Positions 6,020 through 44,150 of a stretch of DNA of 55,840 bases are shown piece by piece. Positions within the stretch are counted from its first letter, which is position 1; each line of letters begins with the position of its first letter. The stretch lies in contig JAAPAO010000188.1 in NCBI GenBank assembly GCA_013115145.1, positions 1 to 55,840 of the forward strand, read 5' to 3'. This stretch comes from Perkinsus chesapeaki ATCC PRA-425. Its lineage: Eukaryota > Protista > Perkinsozoa. The notes under the pieces were generated by a model. It saw only the letters and a program-made list of their open reading frames with translations. It made no database searches and was not told the origin of the DNA. The position numbers were made by a program, and so were the translations under genes.

Positions 6020-7890
6020 TATTCGTTTTCAGCTTCAAAAGGAACCAGTCCAAATCGGATAAGAGTTTCCACCCACGGTTCGACATGCCTGTCCTTCGCA
6101 GTATCGTAAACGTGTCGCTCCCGGTCGCGCTGAGTTGTCACGAACGCTGATTCCTAAAAAAGGTAAATCTAATACAGACAAGGGTTCCAGAGGGCCACTG
6201 AACAAGGAGGAATGCAGCTAATCGATATTCACAATATCTTCTATTTTATCTCGACATTACCAACAATTTCCGACCACCTAACAGGTTTTTAATACAGCAT
6301 CTAGCATACCATTAAACCAGGACGAACCGACGTCAAAACATCGAAGTCCAGCTCACCTTAAGCAACGGACTCCAGTGATGCGTCCTCTGTACTGCAGCGT
6401 CCATTCCTGACCGGGCGAATACATCCGTATGAGCGTTCCGAACATGAATTGAATGCGAGACACATTCATGGACGGTAACCTAAAAATGACACTTGCCGGG
6501 ATCGAACCTGCGTCGCTCTACCAACCTGTGTATCGTGATGCTCATGATTGAGCGTCTGCTTAGTAAGCATGTTGCTCAATAGCTCCAGAACTTCCGGCAA
6601 TGTAACCTGATAAAAATTCTCACTTTCATCTCTTTTCCGAGCCGTGGATCTCTGGAATTTACGCAACTATCAAATTCTAGATGGCAAATTGAAGTTCTGC
6701 TAAACGACGTCCTACATGCTGGCATTCCCGCTTGAAAGTATACGATCGACTAAATTGTAATTATACTTATTAATTTCCTTTGATGCAGTTTCCAAATTTC
6801 TGCCAACGACTGCTATTCGCTACGACTCTGTATGAATTCAGAATGAGGAAATAAGAGTAAGCTACGGACGAGCAACTGATTTACTATACTAAAGATAAAT
6901 GGTAATACGATCAACAATATACACAAGCACTTATAACTTATTTCATCATCAGAGACAAAAAACACAGCTAACATATTTTTTCGTGGAACCGTTTCCGCTC
7001 GTTCTAGTATTCGGCGCGATAAGGGTAAGTTGGTTCACGTCCGTAACGAACTTAAAGATCCGTTACGAAACTCACATTATTCTGTACAGCTCCTCTCATC
7101 GCCACGGTTGGGGTACTCTGCTTAAATTGACCATCCCTCCACAAAGTAAATACACCTTGGTGAGTCAATGATTGAACACCTGACAAGAAGGAAATGCCGA
7201 AAAGGAGCCACTGAGCTAGCCTCGTTCAGACAAGTTCATTTCATCAGTGTTTTATTCGTAAAATATTAGCAAGTCCCCAATTACTTTAGTATCGGCGTTG
7301 GGCGGTTAGAAAGATCAAGAAATAGGACAACTTCCACCTATCAGCGATAGAGAAGAAGATTTAAGAAGGTCTAGAAGATACTTTTCCAGACCTTCGTGCA
7401 GCATCGCACTATTAATAAATTATATTATGTCTTAACATTTGTTGTGGCTCTGGTTACAAAGGCATATTCTTCAACATGCTATTCGACAGTAATATACTCG
7501 AAGGCGATTAATTCTTGTCATGACCATCTCATCACATCTGATCAATTTATTGGCGAGTGAAATCTCCACGAACACACACAGTGTAAATTTTACTTAACAC
7601 GTTATATTACAGTGATGGATACAAGCAACGGGCAGTCGGAAGTGGAGGCTCCCCATCATTCAGGAGCAACATTTCACATACTAGTAAAAGCGAATGAAAC
7701 GATAACGCGCATGCAGTACTAAAGATATCTTACCGCACTCGAAAGAATACGGCTAGATAGGAGGTAAACTTACCCACTAACAAATCAGTTACAACTCTGG
7801 ACGCCAAGGCAGACGTGAAGAGATTCAGGGCGAATCCAGCAAACTGTGACGAGAAATGGGCCTGAGAAATAACAAAGATTTTGACCTATT
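6020..7890 (-). CDS. Multi-exon hypothetical protein (possibly the 3' continuation of the 8031-12712 gene)
   Basis: In-phase exons with GT-AG borders, e.g. AHFSSQFAGFALNLFTSALASRV, DGQFKQSTPTVAMRGAVQNN, VTLPEVLELLSNML...HDTQ|VTVHECVSH...WSPLLK|ESAFVTTQ...AENE*. Confidence 0.5.
6480..6525 (-). other. 46-nt spliceosomal intron made of a tRNA-like D-loop + T-arm + 3' acceptor strand + T-tract
   Basis: GTTGGTAGAGCGACGCAGGTTCGATCCCGGCAAGTGTCATTTTTAG. Phase-0 splicing joins two open exons, and retention gives a stop. Contains the A-box-like TTGGTAGAGC and the B-box GGTTCGATCC. Confidence 0.7.
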
Positions 7891-8030
7891 TCCCCTTACG
7901 ATTTTTCGAAAAATAAAACTATATAAATGCATAATATATAATTTCTATAAATTTATAAAAATTTATATAGAATATTATTGTTCTATAATAATATAAAAAC
8001 TATCGCCTATATATAAAAATTTCTAAAAAT

Positions 8031-11000
8031 TCACGCCTCGGAAAAAAATCCAAATTCCCGGAATAATCCGAGATAGATTTCACTTCGCTTTTGTCTCACC
8101 TGCAATAGTTTCATAAAGTATTCCAAATCCATTATAACAGCCTGAACTTTATCATCACCAAGTTTTCCATGAACAGAACCGTTGAATGCGCTAAATATTA
8201 ACATACGACCAACCAATCTATCATGGATCAACTCGTATTCCTCTGGAGTACCTGACAACGCCAACACTCTTCATAAGATACTCTTCGAGCTGACAGGAGG
8301 AGCTGCATTTTTTGCTCTAAAAAACGTTCGCCATTTTACCACTCGATTACTTTCGGAAATTTTATTATTTTTCCCTTGAAATTTCGTCAGGAATTGTTTT
8401 TCGAACTTACTATCTAAACCCACTTACCCGAAGAAATATCCAAATTCACCCTCAACAAACTTTTCCGAGTTACTTATCTCCCGAAATGTCATTCAAATCC
8501 CCAACGTTACCAAAATTTTCATTTTAACTTATCCACTCTCGCTCACCAACTGCGAAAATGTACGGAAATTTCAATAGTTCTAATTTTTCCCAAATTCAAT
8601 TTCAAGTCACCCCTCACCAGTCTGTATGGTCGTCTCAGCTCTCAATGCATTCGCGCATCCTTGAGAATATCCAAGCCATCCCCATTCCGTGTCGGGGTCA
8701 ATTTTACGGACAGCTTCGATAACCCTTCTTGCATTGTACTCCAACGAACGACCAGTACCAGTATCAGCTCTGAAATAGATTAAAATCTTTCTAGTGCGTA
8801 AATGCTGAGACTCTTCCCGGTGCGCAATGATACTAGACACCTCATGGATGTGTGAAGATACTAAGCGTAAACACCCGAGAACCTTCAGGAAGTTTGAAGA
8901 TTCCAAAAATATCGATTTTTTGGCGATACTTACTATCGATACTATCGATACTTAACAACTCTCTGGTGCGTCAAGATACTTGAAATCTTCCCAGTGCGTC
9001 GAGATACTTAAAATCTTCCCAGTGCGTAAAGATATGTCGGATATCTGCTCACCTAACAATCTGCAATCCTCTCTTTTGATGCATCCTATGGAATGTCTCA
9101 GCCAACTCTGTTCCTTCAGCTCCCTCAGATATGACACCCATTGCCGATACCAATGCCAACTTAACGTGTCCTGAAATGTGGAATAATATAACTCCAACAG
9201 CAGCTCCTGCAATTTCACAGGCATCCTCAGCGTTCCCAATGGCTGAGAACGTGCTAATGAACTAAACAAGAATTGCGATCTTTCTGGGCCTCACCTCTCA
9301 TTTTCAGTATGATTCGCTTGGTTCAAGATCCCCACTAAATCTATTCACACCAAATTTTCCCTCATTTTCCCTAATTTTTCCTTGAATTCTCCTAAATTTC
9401 CTACACTTTTTTTCTGAATCTTTACAGAATTTTCCCCAAAAAACTCCCTGAATTTCCCCTCACCTTTAGGATTCCTCAACATCAACTTCGTCAAAGGATC
9501 ATTCAATATCCTCTCCCGGTCATCCTCATATCGATACAACGACCTTAATACCAGCATATAATTTCCTGGCGCGTGACTTTTCATCTTACTTCACAATAAC
9601 CTCCACCAATTGAACAGGGTCATCCGGCAACTTGTCCGTTCCCGCCAGAACCATCAGCCATTCCCTCGACTCCTCAATATCCGGCACAACTTCATCGTAG
9701 ACCGACAACACCTAAAACGGTAAACAAAAATCGCTTCGCTCCGCTAAAAGAGAAAACTCACCATAAAAGATTCATAGCTTCTCAACATGAACTCCTTGCA
9801 CCAATCACGATCAACAATTCTGCGGTCGGCTGAAATTGCCTTCCGGCAAGCAGCAAACGCGTTCTCTGAGAAAAAATGAAAGATTTTTTTCGTGAAGGAA
9901 ACACAGATCCCGGAGCTCCCGGTCTCATCTACGCAGCTGATCGGATGCAGCTGATGCTTGTGAGCTCATCTCACTCCCCATCCGAACCCTCGTGCCAAAC
10001 GAGCGGGGCCCAATTGGCGTTTGTTGTGACACAAAAACTGTCCCACATTTGCTACAGGTCAGAAAAGCTTGTCCTTCGGAAATCAAGCTCCTGGAGCATT
10101 TTATAAAGGTATCCATGTCACGAGCGTTCCTATACCTACGGACCTCAGACCATGAGCTGCGCCAGATTGCGCGCAGTCTTCATTCATAAGAACATCTATC
10201 CGCACAATTACGATCTAGCGAATTCTCTTTCCAATGAAAAGGACAATTCACTTATCATGGTAAATGATAATGCTTCTACTATAACTCTGCTCCCTCCCGA
10301 TGGTCATAATTGTTGCTACTATAACCAGTATATTAGAACAATGTCAAATTGTCAATATTATCAACTTACCAAAATCCTCCTTAGTAGCTGTTGACTCCTT
10401 AGTTGGTGCGATCGCCGCTATCGCTTCATCCTCGAGCTCACGGACTCCATCAGTGAAGGGTGCAGTGTAAGACATCCTACCAATACAAAAAATATCATTT
10501 TTCGCGGAAGATTTTCCGACGAAAAAATTTGCTCCTCAAAATTTCTCGGCGTTATTGCATAACAGAAATTAAATAATTATATTTCCACCAAGAATAAAAA
10601 AATAGAAAAAAAATCCATTTTGAGCTACAAAAAATTCCCAAAATCCCAAAATATCTCATCCCAATCCTTCTCTCTTGGAAATTCCTCCCTCTACTTGCCT
10701 ACCTATAACAGACAGTTAACCTGTTTTTAACGGCCAAGTATTCATCCATATTTTCTTTTAATATTTTACATGCCAACACATTCAGTGCATGATAGTAGCT
10801 ATCACGAGGCTTCTTACCACCAGCCATATAATCTGTCCTGCGAGGAACTGGGTACCTACAGCTAGAGGTGTCAGAAAAATACGAGGAACAGCAGATAGCG
10901 TATCTCCTTTCAGCCCAGTTAGCCTATTTTTCGCATTAAAAATTTCCCCACCCAATATGCCGACTACTAACAGCGCAGCTTTTTTCCAAGATTTCCCCAA

Positions 11001-12712
11001 CGGACTTTTTTCCGCGAAAATTTCACGAAATTTCAAAATTTTGCAGCGTTTATATTTTCGCGCCGAAAATGTTTTTCCTCTCAAGAAAGCTCCTTCTTCC
11101 ACTATGACGAATTTCCTTCCAGGCTCATTCGGAATCAACTCTTCCTCATAAACTCGGTTACCTGGCAACCGTCATCCCACTTACCCCAATTTCTCTTCCA
11201 ACAACGCTGCCACATCGATACGATGAATCGCCCTGTCTTGTGGAATCTCCAGCAACCTCATCAATATATTGGTCAAAGCTCTCGCTGAACCATTTTGAGA
11301 TGACTCACAAAGAACTGCTATGACATACCTGAAAACGATACGGAATCCACCATGAAGGCGTCAGGAGCCTTGGCAGGCAGCTTCAGATGTCAATATCCCC
11401 AGACGGACCGCGCCTATTTTCTCTCTATCATGTCGAATAACTTTTACTACAGTGCCATTGCGTTTGTTGGGCGACAAGTAGGTTAAAGAGATATACCTAT
11501 AACCCTCAAGATTGCAGCTTATTTCCATCACTAACGCGAAGCATTCAATTTCAACCAACTTGCCGCCCAACAAAACCGAACTGTAGGCCTGCGACTTTGA
11601 CCGATTTCGGAACTACCAACTGCGAAAATAAATAGATATTATTATCAATTGGATTGACCGATTTCTTTCTGAAGAAAGACTGTAGCCAGTATAGAGTTGC
11701 TCAGTTGCCCACGAAAAGGCCGGACCCCGTCAAATTCAGAAATATCACTATATACACTCAAATGCCATAATCGCCGTCGTATAGTTTTCCAGACAAGTTG
11801 GCCATCCCCCTACTCTTTAGGTTGTTGCTTCTGCAATAGCATCTCCAACAACATCCTAGTGTTACTCTGGACAACAGCTCCTGCCCATGGAGCCGCCAGA
11901 CACGAGGCCAACATCGATGCTACATCTGATGGACCTGATGATGAAAAATAACAATATAAAATAACTTATAGTATTTTACATAACTAAATCAACATTGCAT
12001 TATTTATACTATTAAATAAATTAATTCGTGAGTATGCCTATCGAACTCAGTCTCGATAATAATTTTCAAATTCCGAAAAATGCCATCAGCGAGCTCAGAT
12101 ATTCCAAATCTACATTCTCCAACCACTCCCACTATACCCACAAGACGCCGTCGATATCAATCCCCGAAGACAAAATAAAAATCTTTCTGCTGCGCAAAGA
12201 TACTTACCAAGTAAAGTAAATGGCATTCCAAGCCACCGGCAAGCCGCTACATCCGGCAGACCAATCTCAACTGCCCTCGATGAAGACTGCACAGGAGAGG
12301 TCATTCTACGTAGACTTCCACGTAGAAGCGCCTGAAAGGGGTACACCAAGTTCTCAAGGATATCGGAGAAAAAATCGGTATGACGATCAAGTGAAAATTC
12401 GAATGATATGCCAATCGAAAAATATTACCAAAATTCCGCTAATCACATTCTCATTAAAAATGCCTCCCCCCTGGATCGAACCCACGACCTCGCCCTTACC
12501 TCATGATCCACAGGTTTCATCTGCAGCGTCATCCTATGCAAGAAGCCTTCCGGTATAAACCCTCCTTTCGTGAACTTCGGTTGTTGCTCCTCTTCAACAA
12601 CCGAATCCACCGCACTGTCGTCTCCGCTACTGCAAGTGCTGTACGCCTCGGAACAGGAACTTCTCTCGAGCTCGGATTTAGCTGATAACATTTCAGCGCT
12701 ATTTCCTGACAT
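8031..12712 (-). CDS. Large multi-exon protein with an alpha/beta-hydrolase (lipase-type GxSxG) region
   Basis: Exon ~8610-8770 encodes EWGWLGYSQGCANALRAE (nucleophile elbow). Many in-phase exons run from MSGNSAEMLS (12712) through NLVYPFQALL, GPSDVASML, YVIAVLCESS, ENAFAACRKA and FISTFSAIG. It could be two genes. Confidence 0.55.
8960..9035. repeat. Intronic 28-bp tandem repeat (~3 copies; degenerate copies at ~8780-8835)
   Basis: The unit gtgcgtcaagatacttgaaatcttccca starts at 8966, 8994 and 9022. Confidence 0.75.
12456..12499 (-). other. tRNA 3'-half-like sequence forming the 5' end of intron 12353-12499
   Basis: GAG|GTAAGGGCGAGGTCGTGGGTTCGATCCAGGGGGGAGGCATTTTT. Phase-0 splicing joins ...KPVDHE to NLVYPFQ..., and retention gives a stop. 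Confidence 0.7.
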
Positions 12713-12849
12713 ACAAAAACTGTACGAATTTTCAAAAGAAATTTTTTTACCAAAAAATTTATTTTTCGGTAAAATTGAGATGTAGATGATGGCAAAAGCG
12801 CGCCACAATTGGAGAAATTACTAACGAAAATAAATATGAAAACAATCGC

Positions 12850-16703: not shown

Positions 16704-19700
16704 CTATATAATATATAAAACCATTCCCAACACCAATCCAACTGCCCCATCTTGCCTGATACTAACCGGCAACGTGAATGCCCTCAATCTCAGCGCCGCC
16801 GTGCCCTCTCCGTTGCTTCCCGAAAAATGCAAGTAAGTGTCGTCCATAGTCACCACCATATCAGTCTGGGCCAGCCCATCATATCCAACATGTAGCATAT
16901 TAATAACGCCCTTCAGATGACTCCTCGACGGCAACACAACTTCCCTCCTCAAAAATTTAGCACGCACCGGATTCGACACTTCCAAATCGATCACAGATCC
17001 ATCGCAAGATACTCCTCTTCTACACACCCGAAAGATTCCGTCTCCCGACACTCTCATCGACCCTCCAATCGTTATCTTGTCATTCTCAGACATGTTCAAC
17101 TCAGGGAAAACCGGTAGCGGCAGAATCGTCGCAATCGCCAACGGGAACGCATTATCAGTTCTTGCGCGCCCCGAAATTGTAGCCCAATCCCCAAGGCCCC
17201 GAATGGTCTCATCCGCATCGATCTTTCCGCGAATCGTGAAATTTTTCGCCGTGCCAAAAACTTTTGCCAGTCCATCATCAATGAGGGCATTTCTCATCGA
17301 CATCACCGCCGAATATGTAATGTGAACCTCCGGAGATATCTTATCAAATACCTTATAGATCGAATCGCTCTTCACCTTTGCCTCCGCATGACCGTTCAAA
17401 ATGAAGCTGGAGAGTTCCATCGGACACTCGACGCCCCCTCGAAGCATCGGATTGGAGTAGCTCACCGACATCTCGATCGGTTGGGATAATATTTCTGACT
17501 TGTCCATATCGACCTCGAAAACTCCATCCACAGCAGATCCTTTTTTATCGAATTTTTTCCCACGCCATTTCGCCGACAACACCGATGGAGAATCTTCACC
17601 AAATTTAACCTCGTCAATCGACACAGCAATTTCATCATCCTCATTCACATACGAGCCATCTGCACGCATGTACATAGTTTTCGGACCCCCAGCTTTGTGA
17701 GAAATCGTCGTCCTTATCACGGACAAATCTGCCAAGCTGCTCGACACTTCAACTTCCGGCAGGAAGACTCGACAACTGGTCGAAAATTTCCCACCAGTCA
17801 CCAGCTCCGAGATCTCCTTCACAATCTCATAGGGCTTCTCATCAACAACTATCTTGCCACTATTACTCTGCACACACGTATGGTTCCCCGCAGCCGTCGC
17901 GAAGTATCCAACCAAATCCAACCTCGCCAGAGGAATCGGTATGATCTCCTCCGGAACAACTATATCTCGAAATGGCAATCGAATTAGCCCTCCCGCGAAC
18001 GATATGAACCCATTGAAGCTGAGCCTCAGCGCTCCATGGCTTCCAGGAGTTGTCAAGGACTTTGCGGATGAAAGGCAAATAATTATTCCCAATTTTTCCA
18101 TCACTTCGAAGCCCCAACTGGCGAGGCTCAGAATTTTACCGCGAAAGGACTTCTTTTGAGGCTTGGCGGCGATATCATTGTAATTACGAAGAGCACGCCT
18201 GAAGCAAAGATACGTCCAACATATGAAGAGCACGCTTGAAGCAAAGATACGTCCAACATATGAAGAGCACGCTNNNNNNNNNNNNNNNNNNNNNNNNNNN
18301 NNNNNNNNNNNNNNNNNNNNNNNNNNNNNNNNNNNNNNNNNNNNNNNNNNNNNNNNNNNNNNNNNNNNNNNATCCAACATATGAAGAGCACGCTTGAAGC
18401 AAAGATACGTCCAACATATGAAGAGCACGCTTGAAGCAAAGATACGTCCAACATATGAAGAGCACGCTTGAAGCAAAGATACGTCCAACATATGAAGAGC
18501 ACGCTTGAAGCAAAGATACGTCCAACATATGAAGAGCACGCTTGAAGCAAAGATACGTCCAACATATGAAGAGCACGCTTGAAGCAAAGATACGTCCAAC
18601 ATATGAAGAGCACGCTTGAAGCAAAGATACGTCCAACATATGAAGAGCACGCTTGAAGCAAAGATACGTCCAAGAAATACTTCTCTTTTTTTAACAAAAA
18701 TCAGGCAAGTGCTCAGAATTATACCAGTCCGAAGTGTGACAAAAAGTATTCCGAAAATTCCAGAAAAAATATTTCCCTTACGAAAATGATTAAACAATTC
18801 CACTCCTCAGCCGTACGAGGCAAAAAATAACCAATGGCCACCTATTTGCGTGCAAAACGACCAAATGAAACTCGAATAGGACCGTTCCGATAAGGCCTCC
18901 AGAATTTTAAGCTGCACTGATTCTTGACCCAGCTGAGCTAATCCGGCTTGAAAAATCCCACTTCTTTATTACACGAATTTTCCACACAGTTCCACAAGCC
19001 TCTAGAGTATATTTTCTTAACCACAGAACTATCACACAAAAACTGTCCCCCTTGAGGAGTTATGATTCTTGTTAGGAGCAGAACTATAAGAAGTGAGTGA
19101 TAAATAATAATAATTATTAATAACAGAATGTCAATAACGATCCGATAATGCTTGAAATGGTTCCGTTTTAATGAAAAAAAAACTAAAGTGAAATTCGTAA
19201 AAGTAGTCACGCTGCTGTTGCCTTCAACTTGAAAGTTCAAACAATGCTCCCTCCTCCTCCTTCTCCTTTATCCCTTACTTTATATCATACAGAGCTACTG
19301 GTTTAGTCAACACCAACTTGATAGATTCCATCATATTATGCCCGACAGTAACATCGATCAACGCAGCGGTATCTTTGCCGATCGCCAAACCCAGTCCGAT
19401 GCCAGGGATGCGGCGAAGGCCACTTGATAAGGACAAGCTGGAGGTGACCTAAAATGTGAATAGTTTTCTATTGATGTCTATCTCGAGATTAACCTACACG
19501 ATTCATGTCGAAAGTAATAGGTAAAAAATCAGGGGAAAAAAGATTTCGATATTTTCCGAACTGAAAGAGGCGCGGAAATACAAATGTAATGAAAACACTT
19601 CTTTTAAAAATAAAAGCCAAGCAAAAACAGGAAAATTTTGCGTAATAATATACAGCCGAATTTTTCAGAAAAATACGACGCTTTATCATTATTACTGGTA

Positions 19701-20035: not shown

Positions 20036-20192
20036 CCTCTATATAAAAGACGAGATCCGAAATTGCCAACTCTACCGTTAATACCTCTCCCATTTCTAAT
20101 TGCCCTATTCTAAAACCTACTTCTTAAAACTAGTTTCAATTACTCTGACTATCAACATATCCACTTAAAAATATTTTCAAAATTAGCAACAC

Positions 20193-20501
20193 CAACCTCT
20201 AAAGCCTATCTGTTCTATTTCAACTTACAACCTCTAAAGCCTATCTGTTCTATTNNNNNNNNNNNNNNNNNNNNNNNNNNNNNNNNNNNNNNNNNNNNNN
20301 NNNNNNNNNNNNNNNNNNNNNNNNNNNNNNNNNNNNNNNNNNNNNNNNNNNATTTTAACTTACAACCTCTAAAGCCTATCTGTTCTATTTTAACTTACAA
20401 CCTCTAAAGCCTATCTGTTCTATTTTAACTTACAACCTCTAAAGCCTATCTGTTCTATTTTAACTTACAACCTCTAAAGCCTATCTGTTCTATTTTAACT
20501 T
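20193..20501. repeat. 35-bp minisatellite (at least 6 visible copies, spans an N gap)
   Basis: Unit acaacctctaaagcctatctgttctattttaactt; tgttc recurs at 20381, 20416 and 20451. Confidence 0.95.
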
Positions 20502-20639
20502 ATCATAATAAAACATCTCATTCTCATGTAACAACATCTTTTCATTTCTCTAAATTATCAACATATGAGTCATTCTTGTTGAATACAGCAGCAAGCAGCA
20601 GCAGCCAAGTTCAGATCTTCAAGTGTTGTTATATTGACA

Positions 20640-22038: not shown

Positions 22039-22067
22039 TCCGACCTAAAAAGTATCTTTGATTAACT

Positions 22068-26718: not shown

Positions 26719-28263
26719 ATGGCATATCGCCTCCCTCTTCTTTGGGGCTACCTACTGCTCTACATCACATTAGCCGTCTTCGCCATCCTAGCATACATCC
26801 TTCTTGTGTTTCGCTATAAGTTCATGAAAGAGTCCTCCACAGGAACTGATTCGCAACAAGATTTCTACGTCGCTCGAAAACGCTTTACTTGGTTGTGGAT
26901 TGGAATGTCGTATTTCGCCAGCGGCATGGGGACGTGGGTCGTGTATGCTGCCCCGGAGGTTGGCACATTCCTTGGTTGGTGGGGAGTCATCGGCTACGCT
27001 TTGGCATGTATCTTACCGTTGGCTTTGCTCTTGATCATCGGAGTGAAAATCCGGGAAAATATCGATAAGTTGATCGGTGCCGATAGTGGTTATGCAGCAA
27101 CAGATTGGATACTCGCCAGGTTCGGGCGAGTTCTCCAGGTCTACTCTGTCCTTGTTTCGATCTTCATAATGTGGATCGGCATAGTCGCCGAGTACACTGC
27201 TGTTGGGCAAGTGCTGGAGATGTTCACTGGCATTCCCACGTGGCTCACCAGCCTTTCTGTTGCCGTTGTGACTCTCAGCTACACTTTGGTCTCGGGTCTA
27301 CCGATCTCGATTTTAACTGATATGGCACAGGGCTTGGCCGCCATTGGCCTTATAATATTCGCTGTCATTGCTACTTCATCTCAAGTAACGGTCACCCAAC
27401 CTGACTGGGAAGCAGTAGCGAACTGGAGCACTCTGGGCTTTGAAAGTCTAGTCACACTCATCTTGGCGATTCTGAGCGCGCAATTGTTTGATATGGTCGT
27501 CTGGCAAAGAGTTTGGGCTGCCAGGAATGACACTGACTTAAGATGGGGCTTGCTGTATGGTGGCACGCTGGTCTTTCTCACCATGATGGCCTTTGGTGTG
27601 TTGGGTATGTTGGCAGAAGCTCAAGATCGAGCCCGGGCAGCGCCACATCTCACCATCGACCCGTATACCAAATACTTGGCCTTTTTCGATCTCCTTAGCG
27701 CACTGCCCAACGCTGCTGTCGGTTGTGTTCTGGTGCTTGCTGTTTGCCTCTCTACTTCGAGTGTCGACTCCCAGCAATCCGCTCTTTTATCGGTCTTTGC
27801 CGCCGAGTTCGTTAAACGGAATTGGAGTCTACATTGGGCACGCGTGCTACTGCTCGTCATGAACGTGCCAGCAGTTATCCTAGCAATGCGGCAAATATCC
27901 GTCCTCAATCTTTTCCTCATCGGAGACCTCATCGCGGCAACAGTATGTCTCCCTGTCTACTGTGGCCTTCATCCAAGCATCACTTCTCTTGGGGCCGTCT
28001 CTGGTGTTGTTGCTGCTAACCTGACGGTTCTTGTTTGTGGTTGGAGTTGGTATGGCACTTTCCTCGGAGGTTTCCAGATGTACGCGTTGCCCGCAGGCTT
28101 GTACTCGTCTGCTGCTATGATTGTTTTTATCGTTGTTATGTTGACAAGCCTATTCGTTACTGTCGGCGTTTCCGTCCTACAAATGAGATTCTATCCCTCT
28201 TCCGAAAGCTTCCTTTCTTGGGGTAGGCTCATGGCATGTCGAGTGCAAAGCGAGAGCAAGTAA
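26719..28263 (+). CDS. Sodium:solute symporter (SSS/SLC5-like) family transporter, intronless
   Basis: 514-aa multi-pass membrane ORF with DFYVAR..., MSYFASGMGTWVVYAAPEVG, SGLPISILTDMAQG, WQRVWAA and STSSVDS motifs. Confidence 0.9.
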   Translation: MAYRLPLLWGYLLLYITLAVFAILAYILLVFRYKFMKESSTGTDSQQDFYVARKRFTWLWIGMSYFASGMGTWVVYAAPEVGTFLGWWGVIGYALACILPLALLLIIGVKIRENIDKLIGADSGYAATDWILARFGRVLQVYSVLVSIFIMWIGIVAEYTAVGQVLEMFTGIPTWLTSLSVAVVTLSYTLVSGLPISILTDMAQGLAAIGLIIFAVIATSSQVTVTQPDWEAVANWSTLGFESLVTLILAILSAQLFDMVVWQRVWAARNDTDLRWGLLYGGTLVFLTMMAFGVLGMLAEAQDRARAAPHLTIDPYTKYLAFFDLLSALPNAAVGCVLVLAVCLSTSSVDSQQSALLSVFAAEFVKRNWSLHWARVLLLVMNVPAVILAMRQISVLNLFLIGDLIAATVCLPVYCGLHPSITSLGAVSGVVAANLTVLVCGWSWYGTFLGGFQMYALPAGLYSSAAMIVFIVVMLTSLFVTVGVSVLQMRFYPSSESFLSWGRLMACRVQSESK

Positions 28264-28345: not shown

Positions 28346-29929
28346 ATGTCGAAAGATGCCCTAGGTTTCAGCATTGACAATGCGACAGTCTATGCTCTTT
28401 TAATCCCGGTATTTTTCTCATTCGTAACTGCTGCGACCGTCTATGCTATGATGAAACGGTTCAGGAGCTCCTCAAACGCCTTGGACTTCGCTGATGACTA
28501 TTACACGGCTCGAGGTCGATTCTCTGGTCTTACAATTGGTCTGTCTTTCTTCGCCAGCAGTATGGGGTCTTGGGTCGTATTTGCCGTCCCTGAGGCTACG
28601 GCCACTATCGGTTGGTTCGGTCTTATTGGCTACTCCTCCTCATCTGTAGCTGTGTTAATAATATTCATGTTTCTAGGCGTGGAAGTGCGTACTAGAATGA
28701 AGGAGTACGCATCTGCTGGTTATACTTCTCATGAAGGCTTCGCTTTAACTGACTGGGTGTTGGCTAGATATGGCCATGGTATGCAGTATATAACAGCGAT
28801 AGCTTGTCTATTTTATCTCTGGTGTCTTATGACTGCCGAGTATACAGCTTTCGGTTATCTGATAAGCTTGCTTTGTACCATTCCAGTATGGATCGCACAA
28901 TTACTATTATGTCTAACAACAGTCCTTTGTACCCTAATAGCTGGAGTTGCCGCTTCTGTTGTTACCGATGTTGTACAAGGATTCTGTATTGTAATTCTCA
29001 CCGTTGTCGCCATTTGTATGATTGCCACACAAGTCAGTATCGTCTCTGATGATTGGCAGTCAGTGGCCAACTTCGATTCAACTAATATTGTAGCTGGAGG
29101 TTCACTATTTTTATCTGTTATTAATGCCGAACTGTTGAACATGATATCTTGGCAACGAGTCTGGGCTGCAAAGAACCCCAAGCAACTTCGCTTGGGTTTG
29201 GTCCTCGCCGCTGTCCTGACTTTTGTAGTCATCTTCGCATTCGGTCTTATTGGGATGCTGGCAGCTGCGGAAGACCGAGGGCGTGTTGAACCACTACTGG
29301 AGAATAAGTCGCTGGCATTCTTAGTGTTGTTGCGCTCCCTGCCAACCGCGGCTGTTATCACGGCGATCTTGTTGACGATATTATTCACCACGTCTACGGT
29401 GGACTCTGCTCAAGTTGCCGTTATGACGCTGGCGGCTTCTGAGCTTCTGAAATTTGGTAAAAGCTCTAAGTGGGCGCCAATCATTCTGATACCGTTAAAC
29501 GTGTCGGCGCTACTTGCTACTATGTTAAATGTATCAATATTGGACTTGTACTTGATAGCAGATTTGGTACTGACTACTGTATGCCCCTCGTTAATGCTTG
29601 GTCTTGATCCGTCCATGACGCCATTGGGCGCCTTGCTCGGTGTAATAGCAAGCAACTTATCTATTATGGTATTCGGGTGGTGCAGTTTTGGTACGTTCTT
29701 GGGTGGCTTCAAGATGTACCTTATCCCCGGTGACTTTTACTCTGTACAGACTGTGCTTCTGTTTCTTATAGCTATGTCTGTTGGGGCTTTTGTGACCCTA
29801 GTTGCATCTCTAGTGCAAAGGGGCTATTATTTATCTTCTGTCGGCGTTCTTGGCCAAGGTTCCTTTACAGAACGCTTGGTCTCCGCTCATGTGGAGAACT
29901 CCCAGTACAGAGCACCGTTCAGTATATAG
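28346..29929 (+). CDS. Sodium:solute symporter family transporter, tandem paralog, intronless
   Basis: 527-aa ORF with matching motifs (DDYYTAR, LSFFASSMGSWVVFAVPE, AGVAASVVTDVVQG, WQRVWAA, TTSTVDS). Confidence 0.9.
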   Translation: MSKDALGFSIDNATVYALLIPVFFSFVTAATVYAMMKRFRSSSNALDFADDYYTARGRFSGLTIGLSFFASSMGSWVVFAVPEATATIGWFGLIGYSSSSVAVLIIFMFLGVEVRTRMKEYASAGYTSHEGFALTDWVLARYGHGMQYITAIACLFYLWCLMTAEYTAFGYLISLLCTIPVWIAQLLLCLTTVLCTLIAGVAASVVTDVVQGFCIVILTVVAICMIATQVSIVSDDWQSVANFDSTNIVAGGSLFLSVINAELLNMISWQRVWAAKNPKQLRLGLVLAAVLTFVVIFAFGLIGMLAAAEDRGRVEPLLENKSLAFLVLLRSLPTAAVITAILLTILFTTSTVDSAQVAVMTLAASELLKFGKSSKWAPIILIPLNVSALLATMLNVSILDLYLIADLVLTTVCPSLMLGLDPSMTPLGALLGVIASNLSIMVFGWCSFGTFLGGFKMYLIPGDFYSVQTVLLFLIAMSVGAFVTLVASLVQRGYYLSSVGVLGQGSFTERLVSAHVENSQYRAPFSI

Positions 29930-30339: not shown

Positions 30340-30420
30340 CAATTTCGCTACACTTGTCTAGGAAATACAATTTCGCAACTTTAGTGAAAACAATTTCGCA
30401 TGTAGGAAATTCAATTTCGA
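30340..30420. repeat. Short spaced array of (TAGGAAAT)xCAATTTCG motifs
   Basis: CAATTTCG at 30340, 30368, 30391 and 30412. The last three are preceded by TAGGAAATA, TAGTGAAAA and TAGGAAATT. Confidence 0.6.
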
Positions 30421-36326: not shown

Positions 36327-37918
36327 TACCACAAGTGTTATTAAAGCCTGCTTTGGAGTGTTAGCTTTGGAGGGATCCTTACTCAGCCTGAGTTCGCGTA
36401 CCGCGTCGCCTTCTTCCTGTGATAACCACACAATGAGCAATGTCCATATTCACTCATCTGTCGTGAACCTATTGTTGTATGTTTCAAGCTTATAAGAAAT
36501 TGTCATGAAGCTGCACTAAGCATTTGTGTGGTTGTTTAATGGCTGCTAAGTTGTTTCTGATAATCTGATCCTTCTTTTAACACAACCTTGAAGCTTCACG
36601 CACATGCTCACCCTGCACGTCCGACATGAGCTGTGCCACCGTGTGGCAAGGCGTACGCGAGTCGATGTGCACTTGTACATTAACTCGGTTCCGGCGAACA
36701 AGCCCGTAAAGAGTCTGCCTTATGGGCATGCACATCCGCTTGCGTTTATAGGCTTTGTGTTATTCTATTTTCACGAGAAACGAACAACTTAAGGCTCACG
36801 CACTGCGTCGCATGATACGTATCCCTTAAAGGTTCAGAGCCGAGCTCTTCGTCGGCGCGAGATATTCTTAGCAATCGCAGCTTAAAATGCACGCAAAGAC
36901 TCCCACTTTGTAAGAAAGAATATTAAGGAGGTTCATTAAGGCTACGCCAGGTACGTCGGTCAGAAACATCCACTACTAAATGACATGGGATTCTCAACTG
37001 AGAATAGCCCCAGCCAGGCGGACTATGCTTGGTGGACTAACCTAACAGAACCAGTCACCAGCGTTTCGCTGGCAACTTACGTTTTTGAAGCTGTGACTGC
37101 TAAAGATATGTTGCGCAGCGTATACAGTACTGAAGCTCCGAATTCAAAGAAAGGCTCTCTGGGGTTCGAACCCGCGCCGAAAATATCACATGGATAATGA
37201 GATTTTGGTTTATCGCTCTCCTCGTTTCACTAAAACGCCTCTTAAGTTCAAGCAAAAGAATCAACCCGGTGAGTCACCGGCGGTGACCCTCGACTACCAG
37301 TAACTGACATTTTCTTTCACAATTTCCTAACCATCAGTTACTCGTTGTTCTCGAAGCGGTCCTCGTTGTACCATAATTTGACAATAGTATTAATCGCCTC
37401 TCTCAACACTAATCCCTATTAAACTGACAAATGTGTCCATAATCTGGACATGTGTTAACCATCACAAACTTAACAGATCAAGTGAGGCTCGAATTTACAC
37501 TCAATCATAACATTATCATCGATATTCAGTTATTTACATATAACGATCTTGATTGAATTCATATCAATACTCGGCGGTCTCAATCTTCTAAGTCCTCCGA
37601 ATGATTCTGTAGCCTTGGTGTTCTCTGTGGTATCTATTTTATAATGTGCATTATGTCCCTCTGTGGGGCAACTTCGGAAGTCTCTTGCCGGTCTTCCGAC
37701 TCTCTTCGCTTAGGACGCAATGTGGCTGACCACTTGCATTTTGCTATCGACGCTTTGCTGTGCTATGCTACGCTTTGCTATTTTGCTATGGGCGAGCTAG
37801 TTCTGCTCGATATCGACGCTCTTCCATAGGAGGTTGTATCTGCGCTTCAAAGATCGTACCCCTCAGTAATGGTTCAATCGACCTGGTTAAGTATCTTTAC
37901 ACTCAGTTGTCGTTACTA

Positions 37919-39553
37919 ATGAGCTCTGATTCCTCCCCTTCAACAGCTTTGAAGGTCGCAGCTGCCGGTGGGGCACTTTTGGCCACCTCGGCGTATCTTT
38001 ACTATGTTTGGTCAACTCGACCTCTCCCGGAAGATGCCTCTTGCGGGTGTTGTTCGAACGAAGATGATCAGGAATCTTGCGGGTGCGGTGGAGAATCTTT
38101 TACAACTACTACTGGTATGCCGGAGCTTGAAGATTTGGATCTGTCGGCGGACTTGACGCCTGTAGCGAGCCGAAGGTCAACGAGGACTGCCGAGGTTGCT
38201 CGCAAGCGACCTCAAAGGGAATCTTTAGAGAGAGACGAAAATCTTCCGGGTGCGGGTCAAAAGATATTCTTCAAAACTTTCGGGTGCAGCCACAACACCA
38301 GCGACTCGGAATATATGATGGGTCTCTTGTCGAGCTATGGATACGATTTTACAAAGCAAATGTCGGAGGCGAACGTCGCGGTTTTAAATTCTTGCACCGT
38401 GAAGAATCCCAGTGAAGATGCTTTGGTCACCCTGGTGAGAGCGGCGGAGAAGGCAGGTGTGCCTTCGGTTGTGTGCGGATGTGTCCCGCAGGCTGATAAG
38501 AGGAATAAGGCACTGCAGAAATCGAGTTTGGTGGGAACAAGTCAGATTGATAGGATTGTGGAAGTGGTTGAGGAGACGTTAAAGGGGAATCGAGTGACAT
38601 TGTTGCATAGTAAGAAATTGCCAGAGCTCCGGGAGCTTCCGAAGATTCGGCGCAATCCGCTGGTCGAGATTGTCCCGGTCAACACGGGATGTCTGGGAAA
38701 ATGCTCATATTGCAAAACTAAGTACGCCAGGGGGTCCTTGGGGTCCTATAGTAGGCAAGATATAGTTGCACGCGTGCGCATGGCTCTGTCGGAGGGGGTG
38801 CAGCAAATCTGGCTCACATCAGAGGATTTAGGGGCGTACGGATTGGATATCAATACGAACATCGCGGAGCTGCTGAAGGAGATCGTGGTCGAGCTGGAAA
38901 AGTATCCTGAGTCGATGATGAGGTTGGGCATGACGAACCCGCCTTATATTTTGGAACACGCTGAGGAGGTAGCTAAGATTCTTGCGCACCCGCAAGTTTT
39001 TGAGTTCATCCATATCCCAATTCAATCCGGCAGCAATGACGTGCTGAGGCATATGATTCGGGAATACACCGTCGAGGACTTCGATCGGCTTGTGGGTATC
39101 TTACGGGCTCGAGTGCCGAACTTGACGGTGGCGACGGACATCATTTGTGGATTCCCGACTGAGTCGGAGGAGAATCATAAGGAGACGTTGGACTTGATAG
39201 AACGTCACAAATTCCCGGTAATTAATATAAGTCAGTTCTACGCGAGACCGGGGACGTCGGCCGCCAGAATTCGACCGAGAATCCCAGGGAAGATCATCAA
39301 GGCTCGCAGCACTGAGGTGACGAATCTTTTCATGTCTTACTCTTTAAATGACAGCCTTTATCGAGTCGGGGAGATCCTGGATATCTGGTTTGATGAGTTG
39401 GACAGCAGAAGGGGACAGACAATTGGGCACACAAAGAGGTATACTAAGGCGATAGTGATTGGAGAAGAGAGCGGTATGATCGGGAAGCGGAGGAGAGCTC
39501 GAGTGGTTGACAACAGCTCCAAATGGCACATTGTAGTATCTGTAGTTCACTGA
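37919..39553 (+). CDS. CDKAL1: Threonylcarbamoyladenosine tRNA methylthiotransferase (radical SAM, MtaB/CDKAL1 type), intronless
   Basis: UPF0004 motifs TFGCSHNTSDSEYM, NSCTVKNPSE and GCVPQA; radical-SAM CLGKCSYC; DIICGFPTE; C-terminal TRAM-like region. First in-frame ATG at 37919. Confidence 0.93.
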   Translation: MSSDSSPSTALKVAAAGGALLATSAYLYYVWSTRPLPEDASCGCCSNEDDQESCGCGGESFTTTTGMPELEDLDLSADLTPVASRRSTRTAEVARKRPQRESLERDENLPGAGQKIFFKTFGCSHNTSDSEYMMGLLSSYGYDFTKQMSEANVAVLNSCTVKNPSEDALVTLVRAAEKAGVPSVVCGCVPQADKRNKALQKSSLVGTSQIDRIVEVVEETLKGNRVTLLHSKKLPELRELPKIRRNPLVEIVPVNTGCLGKCSYCKTKYARGSLGSYSRQDIVARVRMALSEGVQQIWLTSEDLGAYGLDINTNIAELLKEIVVELEKYPESMMRLGMTNPPYILEHAEEVAKILAHPQVFEFIHIPIQSGSNDVLRHMIREYTVEDFDRLVGILRARVPNLTVATDIICGFPTESEENHKETLDLIERHKFPVINISQFYARPGTSAARIRPRIPGKIIKARSTEVTNLFMSYSLNDSLYRVGEILDIWFDELDSRRGQTIGHTKRYTKAIVIGEESGMIGKRRRARVVDNSSKWHIVVSVVH

Positions 39554-39587
39554 AACGTATTGGAGGTATTTTCCGAATGATAAGGTT

Positions 39588-40065
39588 TTAGTTGCATTCT
39601 AGAGGGAGGGCTTCATTCGGGGAGCTGGTGGTCTGGAAATTAATTAGATTTAGGGAAGTATATTTTGGTAACCTCATAGGGATTGCCAAGAGTTCGTAAA
39701 GGATCGGCAGGAGTTGGGCATGTATTCCATGTCTACTCTTGCTCTTATATCCTCTTATCTGGAAACGCATCTGTGAGGTTGGCGCTTGAATAGTTATTCA
39801 GATCATTGTAGGCTATTGCGGAAGTTCACGGTGAGCCCATTTCGAGCTCACCAATGGGGTAAGTATCAGGCATAAATCCGTCGTCCACTTGTGGGAGCTC
39901 GAAGCTGGGGGTGCAGTTTATGTTGCTGGATTCCTCATAACGATAATTTATATTGAGCTGAGTGTCGCAATTCAAAAGATTGAGTGAAGGCCTGAATTCT
40001 CTTTGTAGCGTCCATGTTGCCTCAGTTTCATTATTATGATTTCTAAGCTCACATCGTCGACGAGA
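39588..40065 (-). CDS. Hypothetical protein fragment, convergent with CDKAL1
   Basis: Open exon-like segments (RCELRNHNNETEATWTLQ...PDTYPIG| and HGIHAQLLPILYELLAIP) with splice-like borders. Confidence 0.3.
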
Positions 40066-40389
40066 CTGTCATATGGGGGAGTGATGCGATTGAGGTACTA
40101 GTGGAGATTGAACGGGGAAATGTCCGCAAAATTCCTGGAAAAATTATTGGAAAATTTTTAGGTTTTTTGAAAACAAACTTCATGAAATAAGGCGGAGGAG
40201 GTAGTTGCTGAGCGAATAGTGGAAGATATTTTCTGGGAAATTTTCGGAAATTTCTGGCTCAAATGGGAAAATATAAAATTCGTTCCAGCCGAAAAGTACT
40301 TCTTAAATTTCGGTGCATTTCTCATACCGATTTTTCTTCAAAAAAGGTAGCGGGCATACTTCGATTTCCCGTGAATTTTTTGCCGAGCT

Positions 40390-43300
40390 TATTTTTAGTC
40401 GCGTCTTGCGAAATGAAGCTGCCGTCGCTGTTGAGGTGCAAACCAGAGATTGGGTGTCTCAAGTTGAATATGAATCTCTAGATAGTATCATTAATACCGC
40501 CTATGCGATGGCGAAGGATGATAGGGATAGTTTTAAAAAGGTACGTATATCACGGAGCATTTGCTTCCTCGGCCGGGCGCGAAAGTTTTCTCACGGATTC
40601 GGAAGTCTAGGAAATGGACGGCTCGCAGAGCCACCATGGCTGTTGGATGCCTTGGATGAATTTCCCGAAAAATTTTCGAGAAGTTTCTGGAGATTTTTTT
40701 GGTTAATTGTATCATATGATCGAGGGTAGGAAATATCTATCGCCGGGACTTCCGGAGATATTCAATAGCCTGAAGTGATTTGCCAAAATGACAGTTCTAC
40801 AGAGTCTGGAGATCGAGCTTCAAGTGTTGTAGAGGTGACCCTTTTCTTTCTCTTTGGGCTGTCTTGGGAAGTGTAGGAAAATGTTGCGCAAAAATGTCGG
40901 TACCGGCGATTGAACCTCTAAGACCTGGACGGTCTTAGTCGAACTGATAACTCCTGAAGGACGGGATATGGCTATTTCAGAGGATCGTGCCGTTGATTAA
41001 TAATCATCATTCGTTGTCGGCTCACCACGCCTTGGTGTTGTTATCGATGATGAACGAGAATGGCTGTGTTGATAGAGTAATGGGTGAAAAGATACTCGAG
41101 GCTGTGGAGAATAGGTAGGAGCAAGTAAGATACAAAATAGGTTAAGTTCTGGACATCTCAGGTATTTCTCATCGGAGACGTTCTTTCCTCCGAGAGAGGC
41201 GGATCCGCGGCAGGCTGAGTGGATAAGGGGGATGCTAGTGTCGCAAATGCCAGGTGAGAAGCGAAAGGCCGTGGGTTCAAATCCTGGTGAGGGCATTTCA
41301 GGTGAATTTCAATCCTTTCCGGATTTCCTTTCCTTTGTTCGACCTGATCAACTAGCTAAGCTCATCATTGCAGACGATCTTCGTCTTAAAGATGACTACA
41401 GGGAGCCTCTGAAACATGTAAGAGCTATTCGTTTGCGTAAAGTAAATGATGATCTTTCTCGTGCTGAGTCGATGTGGTGGTGAAGTCGCCGGTTCGATTC
41501 CCATGTTCGGCATTTTTATCGAGAAACAACGAACGGGATTATTGGAAGGAAATTATAAAGTTTTGACTCTGTAAAGAGAAACTAACAGATTGCTCCATGG
41601 TCACTTGAAACGGCAACGTTGGGTCACGGTGTGGCTTCATTATGGCAAGTGTATTGTCAGAGACCGCAGTCAACAGTGCCGTCGAAGGAGAAGGTCACTA
41701 CACGATGGAAAACAATGGACCCAGTGGATATGGAGGTAAGTAGCTGAGCAGGTAGAGCAGCCTGCTTCATATGTGGAGGTCGGTGGTTCTATTCCTGGTC
41801 ATGGTATTTTAGGCTTGGGAGAGGGATAGGTTTTTAAAGGCGCAAATTCCCTTCAAAAGGATGCGACATGTCGAAGCAGATGCGCAGAAATGGAGGATGC
41901 GACCGGGGAACAGGTAGCCAGTTGTTTAGTAATCTTTGGTAATTCCGGAGGTCAGATTGAGGCCAGCATTGGGAGTGCAACTCACCGAGCTGATCGAGAA
42001 GAGCAATAATATCGTCACCTTAGCGCACTTGATGTCGCCTATCTGTTATGTGAGCGAGTAAAACTGCCGAGTTCCGGGATCGAACTTGGGACCTTTGGGT
42101 TGGTAGACACTCTCTCTTCCGAGGGGACTATAAAAGAACTGCAGCGGACGTGTGCGCTAAAGCTGTTATGAAGATGCAGAAGAAGAAGTTGGAGTCATGC
42201 ATTGTGGTGATTGCACTGGTAAGTGACTTGGGAAACACTGTAAGTGTTAGAAATTACAATTATCTAACTTATGAAAGGTCAGAAGGGATTCTCATCTCTC
42301 TGGCGCGAAGTGGCATAAATCATCCTTCTGAGGATCTGATTATCATGCCTGGTAATCTTGCTCAGTCACTCTCACGGTTGTCCTTAACACCGGATCTCCA
42401 CAAGGTTTGGGATGCCGTACTCTTGCCGTCTATTGGCAAGTTGAAGGTCAAGGATCTCACGTCACAGGTGACGAGTGTCTTCGCGTCACGTCACACGTAT
42501 GCCATCCCTGTCAGGCCGTCTTACCCCCGCATCTTCGACTGAGCTCGTCGAGTTCGGTCGAGTTTGATTTGTCAGTTCTGCTCTTCAGAGCATTGGTTCA
42601 GTCTGGGTTCGTACCGAGGACGTCTACGGGCATTGAGGTGAGGTCATCGCCTCGCCGACGTGATCGATTGCTCTGCAGAAAATCTGCGGGTTGCTAAGTA
42701 AAACGTTGAAGTCAAGTGAGGTTGTCCGAGTCGAATCAGTGTCGATGCTGGTTCGTTTAATGTTGAGGGCGGAGATCAACCATAAAGGTTTGAGGGAGCT
42801 GCTTATGGGTAGTTGTCCTCGGTGGGAACCGAAGGAAGCTAATTCGAAGGTAAGGGTGGTACTTTACACCGATAGTCGCGGGCACATGGGCTTAATGCAG
42901 TGCGAGGCGTAAAAAGGGCCGCGTTGTTTCGCGTGCTTGTTAGTTGTTCCGAATCTCTTACTGGCCTCACTTGGGAGGAAGGTGTGCTCCTTTGCCAATA
43001 ATAGAAAGTCTGATACCTCGCTGGAAGGCGCTTTCGGAGAGCCTTCCTGATAGTTGCCAACGTTTTGGTGAAGTTGATGTTATCTCAGTTGCTTGTTTGT
43101 AACTTGTAAGTATCTTGGCAGAGCGATAAAATTGTAATTATAAATTTTGCAGAAGCTGAGGATCCATGAAATTCAAAGAATGTTCGCTGCCTAAAGTTTA
43201 GTGATTTTGTGGCGCGCGACATTTTGGGAGCAGTTGCCTTGGTTGAAGTCAGTAAACCGTGGAGGAATGCAGATTCAATTTTTCTTGAGGAGAAGATTTC

Positions 43301-44150
43301 CCATCTGTATTCATATAATATCTCCTCATTAGTAACAAACTTTAACGGTGAAAGTTTGTTGCGAGATTGAAAATTTCACTCTCAGAGATCACACTTCCGT
43401 GAGACGTGGGTCCACTGTTGTTGGTGGGCACTGCCCAGGCATGTTTATGATAGGAAATGGCAGTAGCAACTGGCTCGTTGATATTCTTGAGAGTTCATTT
43501 CGATAAGAAACCTTTAACGAAGAAGGAGCTTGAAACAGTGTTGGCCTTGTGGAACAGTTGTAAGACGGCTGTGGACGACTTGGCTCAGGTGAGGTCGTTG
43601 GTTCGATCCCGGGGAGGGGTATTTTAATTGTATTTATTCAGGGTGAAAGGCTTTTATTGTTGAACGCTATTCATGCTACGGGTCACCCAGATATACTAGA
43701 AGGCGACGAAGACTACGAAACTGCACTGAGAAGGCATCTTCTTCCGAAGTACTCATACCGCTCTCTCGATTTCTTCTTGAACTTTGTCGGTATACCGCAC
43801 TCGGCACTTTTGGTTAGGCAAACAGCAGCCGTTATTCTTCCTTTTCAGCCCGGACTTCTCGTTGGAAAATCTTGGACAAGTCGGTACATGGCAGGAAGGA
43901 GGCGGCTTAGAGCATTGAGCAACTGTGCATGATTTCAGCGATGTGTTTCTGAATAATGCTTCCTGAAGCTTTGAGTTTTCAAGTCGAGAACCGCCCGGAT
44001 TGAGACTTGAACAAGCGAAGTATTACGGGCCGAACACCTACCAAGTAGCCTAGCCGAAAGGCAACGGACACTTCTATTCGACGAACTATACAGTGGCAAC
44101 CGCAGTACGGGTATCGAACACACTCCTCAGTTGCACGCATTGCCTGAATA
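40390..44150 (+). CDS. Long multi-exon helical hypothetical protein; host of six tRNA-like intronic elements
   Basis: Hand-spliced continuous frame: PEVICQND...VVE|RIVPLIN...ENR|YFSSETF...MPG|EFQSF...PLKH|IAPWSLE...DME|AWERDRF...GNR|LRPALGV...; KPLTKK...LAQ|GERLLLLNA...; last exon ...TPQLHALPE*. The start is uncertain. Confidence 0.65.
40890..40945 (-). other. Antisense tRNA-like 3' end within intron ~40835-40980
   Basis: The minus strand reads CTAAGACC-GTCCA-GGTCTTAG (8-bp hairpin) then AGGTTCAATCGCCGGTACCGACATTTTT, with T54-A73 spacing of 20 nt. Confidence 0.5.
41254..41301 (+). other. 48-nt probable intron made of a tRNA 3' half
   Basis: CAG|GTGAGAAGCGAAAGGCCGTGGGTTCAAATCCTGGTGAGGGCATTTCAG|G has strong splice sites, but it is in frame and stop-free, so retention cannot be excluded. 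Confidence 0.6.
41462..41517 (+). other. tRNA-like fragment inside intron 41418-41588
   Basis: TGCTGAGTCG...GAAGTCGCCGGTTCGATTCCCATGTTCGGCATTTTT, with T54 (41493) to A73 (41512) spacing of 20 nt. Confidence 0.6.
41736..41812 (+). other. 77-nt intron = GTAAG + tRNA body (positions 8-73) + TTTTAG
   Basis: GTAAG-TAGCTGAGCAGGTAGAGCAGCCTGCTTCATATGTGGAGGTCGGTGGTTCTATTCCTGGTCATGGTA-TTTTAG. The phase-0 join is DME|AWE, and retention gives an immediate TGA. Confidence 0.75.
42061..42130 (-). other. Antisense full-spacing tRNA-like body (positions 8-73) within an intron
   Basis: Minus strand TAGTCCCCTCGGAAGAGAGAGTGTCTACCAACCCAAAGGTCCCAAGTTCGATCCCGGAACTCGGCAGTTTT. T8, G18G19, C32T33, A37A38, AGGTC and GTTCGA all fall at canonical offsets. 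Confidence 0.7.
43589..43641 (+). other. 53-nt intron starting with a tRNA 3' part
   Basis: CAG|GTGAGGTCGTTGGTTCGATCCCGGGGAGGGGTATTTTAATTGTATTTATTCAG|G. The phase-0 join is LAQ|GERL, and retention gives a stop. Confidence 0.72.

Follow-up and report, generated by a model that had tools for sequence, protein, structure and literature searches.

Locus and elements

A stretch of 55,840 nt from Perkinsus chesapeaki ATCC PRA-425 (assembly GCA_013115145.1, contig JAAPAO010000188.1), hereafter the window, contains eight short elements that resemble the 3′ portion of a tRNA gene and are termed relics below. Six of the eight are found in one gene on the forward strand, the host gene (Table 1). A preliminary description of the window proposed that tRNA-derived sequence had been captured as ready-made introns. 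The main result of a comparison with Perkinsus marinus ATCC 50983 is one that this description did not foresee, namely that the B box of the relics is conserved between the two species in both orientations.

All eight elements were found at the positions and in the form previously described, with a B box, exact tRNA spacing, an A and a T-tract. On the sense strand, each consists of a variable-loop-like RAGGTC, about 4 bases, the GGTTC[AGT]A of a T-loop, 14 nt, an A, and a run of TTT to TTTTT (GTTTT in one). CCA is absent from all of them.

The host gene lies within the part of the window (26.7–54.6 kb) that is syntenic with a P. marinus locus, L001 (contig GG678922.1, around a CDKAL1-like gene). 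The CDKAL1-like open reading frame (ORF) of the window (37919–39550, 544 aa) is 77% identical to the P. marinus protein, with all other matches at or below 61%. A tblastn comparison with L001 revealed 14 conserved coding blocks on the + strand between 40382 and 43918, which when joined form one continuous ORF, and the positions and phases of all 13 introns are identical in both species. The predicted host proteins share 72% amino acid identity. Comparison of the two loci confirmed that six elements lie in real introns (I1, I3, I4, I5, I7 and I12), four in the sense and two in the antisense orientation, which agrees with the orientations first assigned.

Table 1. Host gene, introns, relics and the palindromic B box in the window, with intron lengths at the P. 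marinus locus.
Feature	Position	Strand	Window length	P. marinus length	Description
Relic	6480..6525	-			Best T-stem (4/5 pairs) and D-loop-like GTTGGTAGAGCG; bounded by GT...TTTTTAG; open frames on both sides
Relic	12456..12499	-			Sense, at 5′ end of ~175-nt candidate intron; donor GTAAGG at 12499
Palindromic B box GGTTCGAACC	37157..37176	.			Intergenic, no T-run, ~755 nt upstream of CDKAL1-like ORF
Host gene of six relics	40382..43918	+	~540 aa as spliced		Conserved Perkinsus protein; 13 GT-AG introns
I1	40541..40980		440 nt	58 nt	Antisense relic in both species
I1 relic	40890..40945	-			Antisense to host gene; 35 nt from acceptor, 350 nt from donor
I2	41115..41161		47 nt	48 nt	No relic in either species
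I3	41254..41301	+	48 nt	54 nt	Phase 1; sense relic in both species
I4	41418..41660		243 nt	65 nt	Sense relic in window only
I4 relic	41462..41517	+			Mid-intron; absent from P. marinus I4
I5	41736..41812	+	77 nt	98 nt	Phase 0; sense relic in both species
I6	41914..41955		42 nt	97 nt	No relic in either species
I7	42058..42106		49 nt	47 nt	Antisense relic (- strand) in both species
I8	42219..42365		147 nt	1226 nt	No relic in either species
I9	42468..42514		47 nt	47 nt	No relic in either species
I10	42638..42678		41 nt	52 nt	No relic in either species
I11	42850..43453		604 nt	67 nt	No relic in either species
I12	43589..43641	+	53 nt	55 nt	Phase 0; sense relic in both species
I13	43749..43848		100 nt	165 nt	No relic in either species

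Removal of I5, I7 and I12 is required to maintain the reading frame. I3 is in frame and free of stop codons in both species, and is assigned as an intron because it has GT-AG ends and protein similarity collapses within it. The element originally given as 42061–42130 was too long; the actual intron is I7, and the sequence from 42107 onward encodes EHSLFRGDYK, which is conserved with third-position changes only.

I3 comprises a sense relic that runs from the variable loop through the T-run, ending in the acceptor CATTTCAG. I5 is nearly a whole tRNA-like body with GTAAGTA in place of the 5′ acceptor strand, and its acceptor is likewise the T-run plus AG (TATTTTAG). The T-tract also stands directly before AG in 6480–6525. 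I7 consists entirely of an antisense relic, the terminator of which, GTTTTAC, reads on the + strand as the donor GTAAAAC. In I12, the donor GTGAGGTC overlaps the variable-loop AGGTC and is followed by the T-arm, the A and the T-run, and here the T-tract precedes the acceptor by 16 nt. The short I1 of P. marinus is mostly antisense relic.

Origin of the relics from tRNA genes

The regular expression used in the preliminary description (G-TTC[AGT]A, 14 nt, A and (G)TTT) has 8 matches in the window compared with 2.8 expected from second-order Markov shuffles, where the maximum was 7 in 100 shuffles. A stricter form, GGTTC[AG]A.{14}AG?TTT, has 6 matches compared with 0.12 expected.

ARAGORN predicted 0 tRNA genes in the window and gave only noise at a low threshold. 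Across the full window Rfam gave no tRNA match at the gathering threshold, and within 38000–46000 there was none up to E 10. The elements do not form the cloverleaf with paired acceptor and T stems that a functional tRNA gene would specify. They retain the variable-loop AGGTC, the T-arm, the 3′ acceptor strand, A73 and the oligo-T terminator of RNA polymerase III (Pol III). By these parts the elements are clearly fragments of tRNA genes, as first suggested, and are not tRNA genes themselves. With the terminator in register and CCA absent, mature tRNA is excluded as the source.

Little of the tRNA structure is left. The T-stems have 1–4 of 5 pairs, often just the two inner pairs that are part of the B box, and no 5′ acceptor strand is present in an alignment of 15 relics. 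For eight of nine sequences the predicted folding does not exceed that of shuffles (z +0.5 to −1.6), and the I5 relic, which is whole-tRNA-like, reaches z −3.6 but adopts a hairpin and not a cloverleaf. An A-box-like sequence was found in two of the eight elements, I5 and 6480–6525.

Pairwise identity among the elements is 7–21 of 31 positions (mean 14.3 for non-orthologous pairs). The positions in common are those of the generic variable-loop/T-arm consensus, and the acceptor strands are all different. The elements were earlier thought to represent a family resembling short interspersed elements (SINEs), and this was rejected, the copies being alike only in the generic tRNA consensus. tRNA-derived SINEs and tRNA pseudogenes of animal and plant introns are similar in that tRNA sequence with a B box is scattered in non-coding DNA. 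However, a SINE begins with a 5′ tRNA head containing both the A and the B box, continues into a body, ends in a LINE-like or A-rich tail and belongs to a family of copies, whereas the Perkinsus relics include only the 3′ third of a tRNA, end at their own terminator, have no such head, body, tail or family, and fill introns of 46–77 nt. Identity as tRNA-derived SINEs was also rejected on these grounds. The Dada transposons of P. marinus (PMC3706591) show that Perkinsus is rich in tRNA gene copies and has mobile DNA associated with tRNA, but Dada elements are 4.7–11 kb transposons located inside tRNA genes (PMC3706591). No Dada sequence adjoins the relics, and no link to them was found.

Conservation of the B box between species

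All 13 introns and five of the six relics are common to P. marinus, I4 being the one intron that is shared without its relic. The P. marinus counterparts of I1, I3, I5, I7 and I12 each contain GTTC[AGT]A in the same orientation as in the window. In the host gene, four-fold degenerate sites show only 26% identity (39/151) and are saturated. In contrast, the B-box core from G53 to C61 is 82% identical. Position 57 varies, as it does in the consensus, and A58 is invariant. The best-conserved relic is that in I7, where a 17-mer, CCGGGATCGAACTTGGG, is identical in P. marinus on the antisense strand. P. marinus I3 retains GGTTCGATCC, and I12 retains GAGTTCGATCC as well as the A at +20.

As the intron positions and five relics are shared across saturated synonymous divergence, the relics are not recent and, on this comparison, are older than the split between the window species and P. 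marinus. Orthologous relics have 16 identities of 31 compared with 14.3 for non-orthologous relics (permutation p 0.19). They are no more alike than non-orthologous ones; it is the generic motif that has been retained and not the individual sequence.

The last result would also be expected if the relics were neutral debris, i.e. functionless pseudogene or SINE-like litter, with the apparent conservation due to ascertainment or to gene conversion with real tRNA genes. The tRNA gene copies of P. marinus number in the hundreds and are targeted by Dada transposons (PMC3706591), and the P. marinus relics were located in part by a motif search. However, the joint chance of a match in motif and orientation in all five orthologous introns is 4.8e-8, estimated by shuffling those introns, and the seven core positions outside the search anchor are identical in 25/35 cases (71%, p 2.5e-8) compared with the 26% at neutral sites. 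In addition, the remainder of each intron is unalignable between species and the shared tracts are 11–17 nt. Tracts of this size are short for gene conversion. Neutral debris is consequently regarded as quite improbable, and the B box in these introns is probably still used.

The conserved positions G53, U54, U55, C56, A58 and C61 are also those of the T-loop consensus, and the motif could act in RNA. A T-loop-like GUUCNANNC in the pre-mRNA might serve as the target of a tRNA enzyme (RNase P, RNase Z or a pseudouridine synthase of the Pus4/TruB type) and so affect splicing or processing, and four of the six host-gene relics are in the sense orientation that this would need. Against it, two of the conserved relics are antisense, including the best-conserved one in I7, and there are copies between genes. 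In mRNA targets of Pus4/TRUB1-type enzymes the transcribed strand carries GUUCNANNC in a stem-loop like a T-arm, which the relics do not provide: their T-stems are eroded, the 5′ acceptor strand is missing and folding is no better than in shuffles. A function at the RNA level appears very improbable. The antisense relics together with the loss of structure point to a constraint on the DNA sequence and not on a fold of the pre-mRNA. A role for A58 as a branch point was rejected by reasoning only, as the motif is unlike yUnAy/CTRAY and the explanation fails for antisense relics.

A DNA motif with a terminator in register might instead mark small Pol III units, in which the B box serves as promoter and the oligo-T as terminator for short RNAs made from inside introns. 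All eight window relics keep the A and the T-run at exact tRNA spacing, including two (40890 and 41462) that are away from splice sites, and in P. marinus an A is found at +20 in 5/7 relics, together with a T-rich trailer. However, the A-box-like sequences are confined to two elements and that of I5 is not conserved in P. marinus, and the T-run has been lost from P. marinus I1 and I7 despite retention of the B box. Units of this type are therefore considered improbable.

Relics and introns

Perkinsus introns are mostly <100 bp and can be as small as 39 bp (PMC3101222). The preliminary description proposed that tRNA-gene DNA or pre-tRNA cDNA had been inserted into coding sequence with the relic ends serving as splice sites. 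I3, I5, I7, I12 and 6480–6525 are scarcely more than a relic, and their splice signals can be traced to relic ends (T-run plus AG in I3 and I5, GTAAAAC in I7, GTGAGGTC in I12). The lack of CCA and presence of a terminator fit a gene or primary transcript as the source, and insertion would not conflict with selection having acted on the B box at a later stage. However, all 13 intron positions are common to P. marinus and hence no intron gain can be dated. I4 is present in both species and its relic in the window alone, and in the 440-nt I1 the relic and the donor are far apart. Furthermore, introns of the host gene without a relic are equally short (41–47 nt), the copies do not form a repeat family, and relics also occur outside introns. 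As a general account, capture of ready-made introns is considered unlikely. A weak 7/9 match around the I4 relic, seen by eye, is a candidate target-site duplication.

The arrangement is reminiscent of the introners of Micromonas, fungi, dinoflagellates and others, in which a short insert forms a whole intron and carries or creates the splice sites for it, in some cases whichever way it is oriented (PMC9860276; 10.1101/2020.10.14.339549). The element likewise coincides with an intron and supplies its splice sites in I3, I5, I7 and I12 (and 6480–6525, if it is an intron), but not in I1, I4 or 12456–12499. Introners are near-identical, recently multiplied families that vary between close relatives, whereas the Perkinsus relics are ancient, share only the universal tRNA consensus and are in introns common to both species; neither near-identical copies nor recent variable gains were seen among them. 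The pan-eukaryote introner survey makes no mention of tRNA, SINE or Perkinsus.

B-box sites in minimal introns

The closest parallel is with the 'extra TFIIIC' (ETC) sites of yeasts and the B-box-only TFIIIC sites of fission yeast and mammals. ETC sites are described as bound by TFIIIC without polymerase and as chromatin boundaries (PMC3395662). ETC sites and relics are both isolated B boxes without a working tRNA gene, in which the motif is kept and the flanks have diverged. Both would act at the DNA level, independently of the strand of the neighbouring Pol II gene, and some copies of each are near gene starts. In the relic alignment the consensus is GGTTCGAnnCC in the absence of a functional Pol III gene, and the core is conserved well above the four-fold sites while the flanks diverge. 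The Perkinsus sites differ in being visibly tRNA-derived, with acceptor strand, A73 and terminator in register, and in lying mostly in tiny spliceosomal introns, six of them in one gene.

The reading favoured here, to which roughly an even chance (about 0.5) is assigned, is that the relics are ancient 3′ portions of tRNA genes in introns, and that their B box is under purifying selection as a DNA motif in the manner of ETC sites. Decayed tRNA-gene portions, from the variable loop to the oligo-T terminator, sit in introns and in some cases between genes; their origin, position, age, conserved motif, lost structure and indifference to orientation are shown by the sequences compared. The tRNA fold has eroded, while the B box (GGTTCGAnnCC and some flanking bases) has been maintained on either strand, most probably as a site at which TFIIIC, a Pol III factor, could dock. 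Binding of TFIIIC is an inference, as would be any influence on chromatin or the host gene. With Perkinsus introns squeezed to ∼41–50 nt, a constrained relic of 35–40 nt would come to fill the whole intron by shrinkage, and its ends could be co-opted for splicing. The T-run plus AG would then become the polypyrimidine tract and acceptor (CATTTCAG in I3, TATTTTAG in I5), an antisense T-run would become a GTAAAA-type donor (GTAAAAC in I7), and the variable loop could be overlapped by a donor (GTGAGGTC in I12).

Several points weigh against selection on B boxes as ETC-like sites. Tfc1 and Tfc4 are the only TFIIIC subunits reported as detectable in alveolates (PMC1540719), and no report of a B-box-binding subunit in alveolates was found in the literature. 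Since one consensus describes both the B box in DNA and the T-loop in RNA, the argument for a role in DNA depends on the two antisense relics and the eroded stems. The A at +20 is partly retained in P. marinus, as is the T-rich trailer, which a model with ETC function only would not require, and the clustering of six relics in one gene is not accounted for. The comparison involves two species and five orthologous relic pairs, and contigs from two RNA runs (X6 and X7) include none over 40300–44100 or 6300–12299.

A broader interpretation is that minimal introns hold a network of selected B-box-only sites for Pol III factors derived from dead tRNA genes, and that tRNA insertions also founded some introns. 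This combination is put forward tentatively and is rather doubtful. If correct, it would tie together tRNA genes, control of chromatin or transcription, and the make-up of introns in a way not described in any eukaryote.

Were the B boxes bound, dead tRNA genes would have been kept as regulatory or architectural DNA within introns of ∼45–80 nt. They would represent a second, independent example of the ETC type, distant from yeasts and animals, in an alveolate with barely known Pol III factors. The relics also offer a case for the debate on intron origins, as one in which splice signals derive from a Pol III terminator on one strand or the other. Literature searches on tRNA-derived intron sequence, B-box/TFIIIC, SINE or tRNA-like sequence in Perkinsus, on tRNA-like intron gain and on P. 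chesapeaki introns found no published description. Methods exist for culturing Perkinsus and for transfecting P. marinus.

Elements outside the host gene

The claim that all eight elements are intronic stands for the six in the host gene and is plausible for 12456–12499, where the frame is open up to the GTAAGG donor and again after a TTTCAG acceptor, suggesting that this element starts an intron. It could not be extended to 6480–6525, which has no verified host gene. Window positions 1–26 kb have no translated similarity to the P. marinus locus upstream of the sodium:solute-symporter (SSF) gene (L002), and these two elements are therefore without an orthologous comparison.

An ORF on the - strand (6466–6666) runs through 6480–6525 and gives a weak, gapless GH99 alignment to the NEWHEGTQIE...YLDYRP region of endo-alpha-mannosidase. 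The Pfam match (E 0.002) does not reach the cut-off, and that to human MANEA has E 0.4. No orthologue was found among 1.8 billion representatives and no second GH99-like exon near the element, and the match vanishes when the part encoded by the element is removed. A GH99 identity was rejected, the match being probably due to chance.

The palindromic B box listed in Table 1 has a possible counterpart in P. marinus, where a B-box relic (L001 9227–9259) is located ∼750 nt upstream of the CDKAL1 orthologue, though the surrounding DNA is unalignable. P. marinus relics outside introns were found at L001 6962, 9247 and 11751. Those at 6962 and 11751 have no counterpart in the window, indicating that there has been some turnover and that relics are not confined to introns. 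A search of the window with a relic profile revealed no further strong copy, although it did pick up the palindromic B box.

Other features of the host gene and the window

Two segments, 43106–43139 (in I11) and 12174–12207 (- strand), have in common an extended donor-like motif, GTAAGTATCTT(G/T)GC.... In 43106–43139 it is followed by TGGCAGAGCG, which is similar to a tRNA D-loop/A box. This segment may represent another decayed relic, or else an exon boundary overlooked within I11.

P. marinus I8 (L001 13393–14618) is 1226 nt compared with 147 nt in the window, probably as the result of an insertion. The gene called in P. marinus (370 aa, L001 12615–15481) begins at an internal ATG, and conserved coding blocks are found ∼590 nt further upstream (from L001 12029), so that the public P. 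marinus model probably lacks part of the 5′ end of the gene.

Assembly gaps at 18274–18371 and 20255–20351 are within tandem-repeat arrays with 37-nt and 35-nt units, respectively. Both are at least 5.8 kb from every element, and neither an element nor the host gene is touched. Tandem arrays were identified at 50898–52337, 49694–50047, 18141–18742 and 20182–20526 with periods of 33/36, 21, 37 and 35 nt, respectively; the 33/36-nt array is inside a 479-aa ORF, and three of the four assembly gaps fall within such arrays. At 9714–9749 and 10856–10860, contig depth in a DNA run (X2) is up to 1240 compared with ∼65, and many contigs join or end there. These positions look like a short, high-copy dispersed repeat.

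Two tandem ORFs resembling sodium:solute symporters, each with a weak Pfam SSF match, are present at 26719–28263 and 28346–29929, whereas the syntenic P. marinus locus has one called SSF gene. Finally, 45329–45868 and 46974–47509 include two segments (300 and 152 nt) that are 96–98% identical and ∼1.64 kb apart, overlapping an ORF at 45123–45905. This pair looks like a recent tandem gene duplication.

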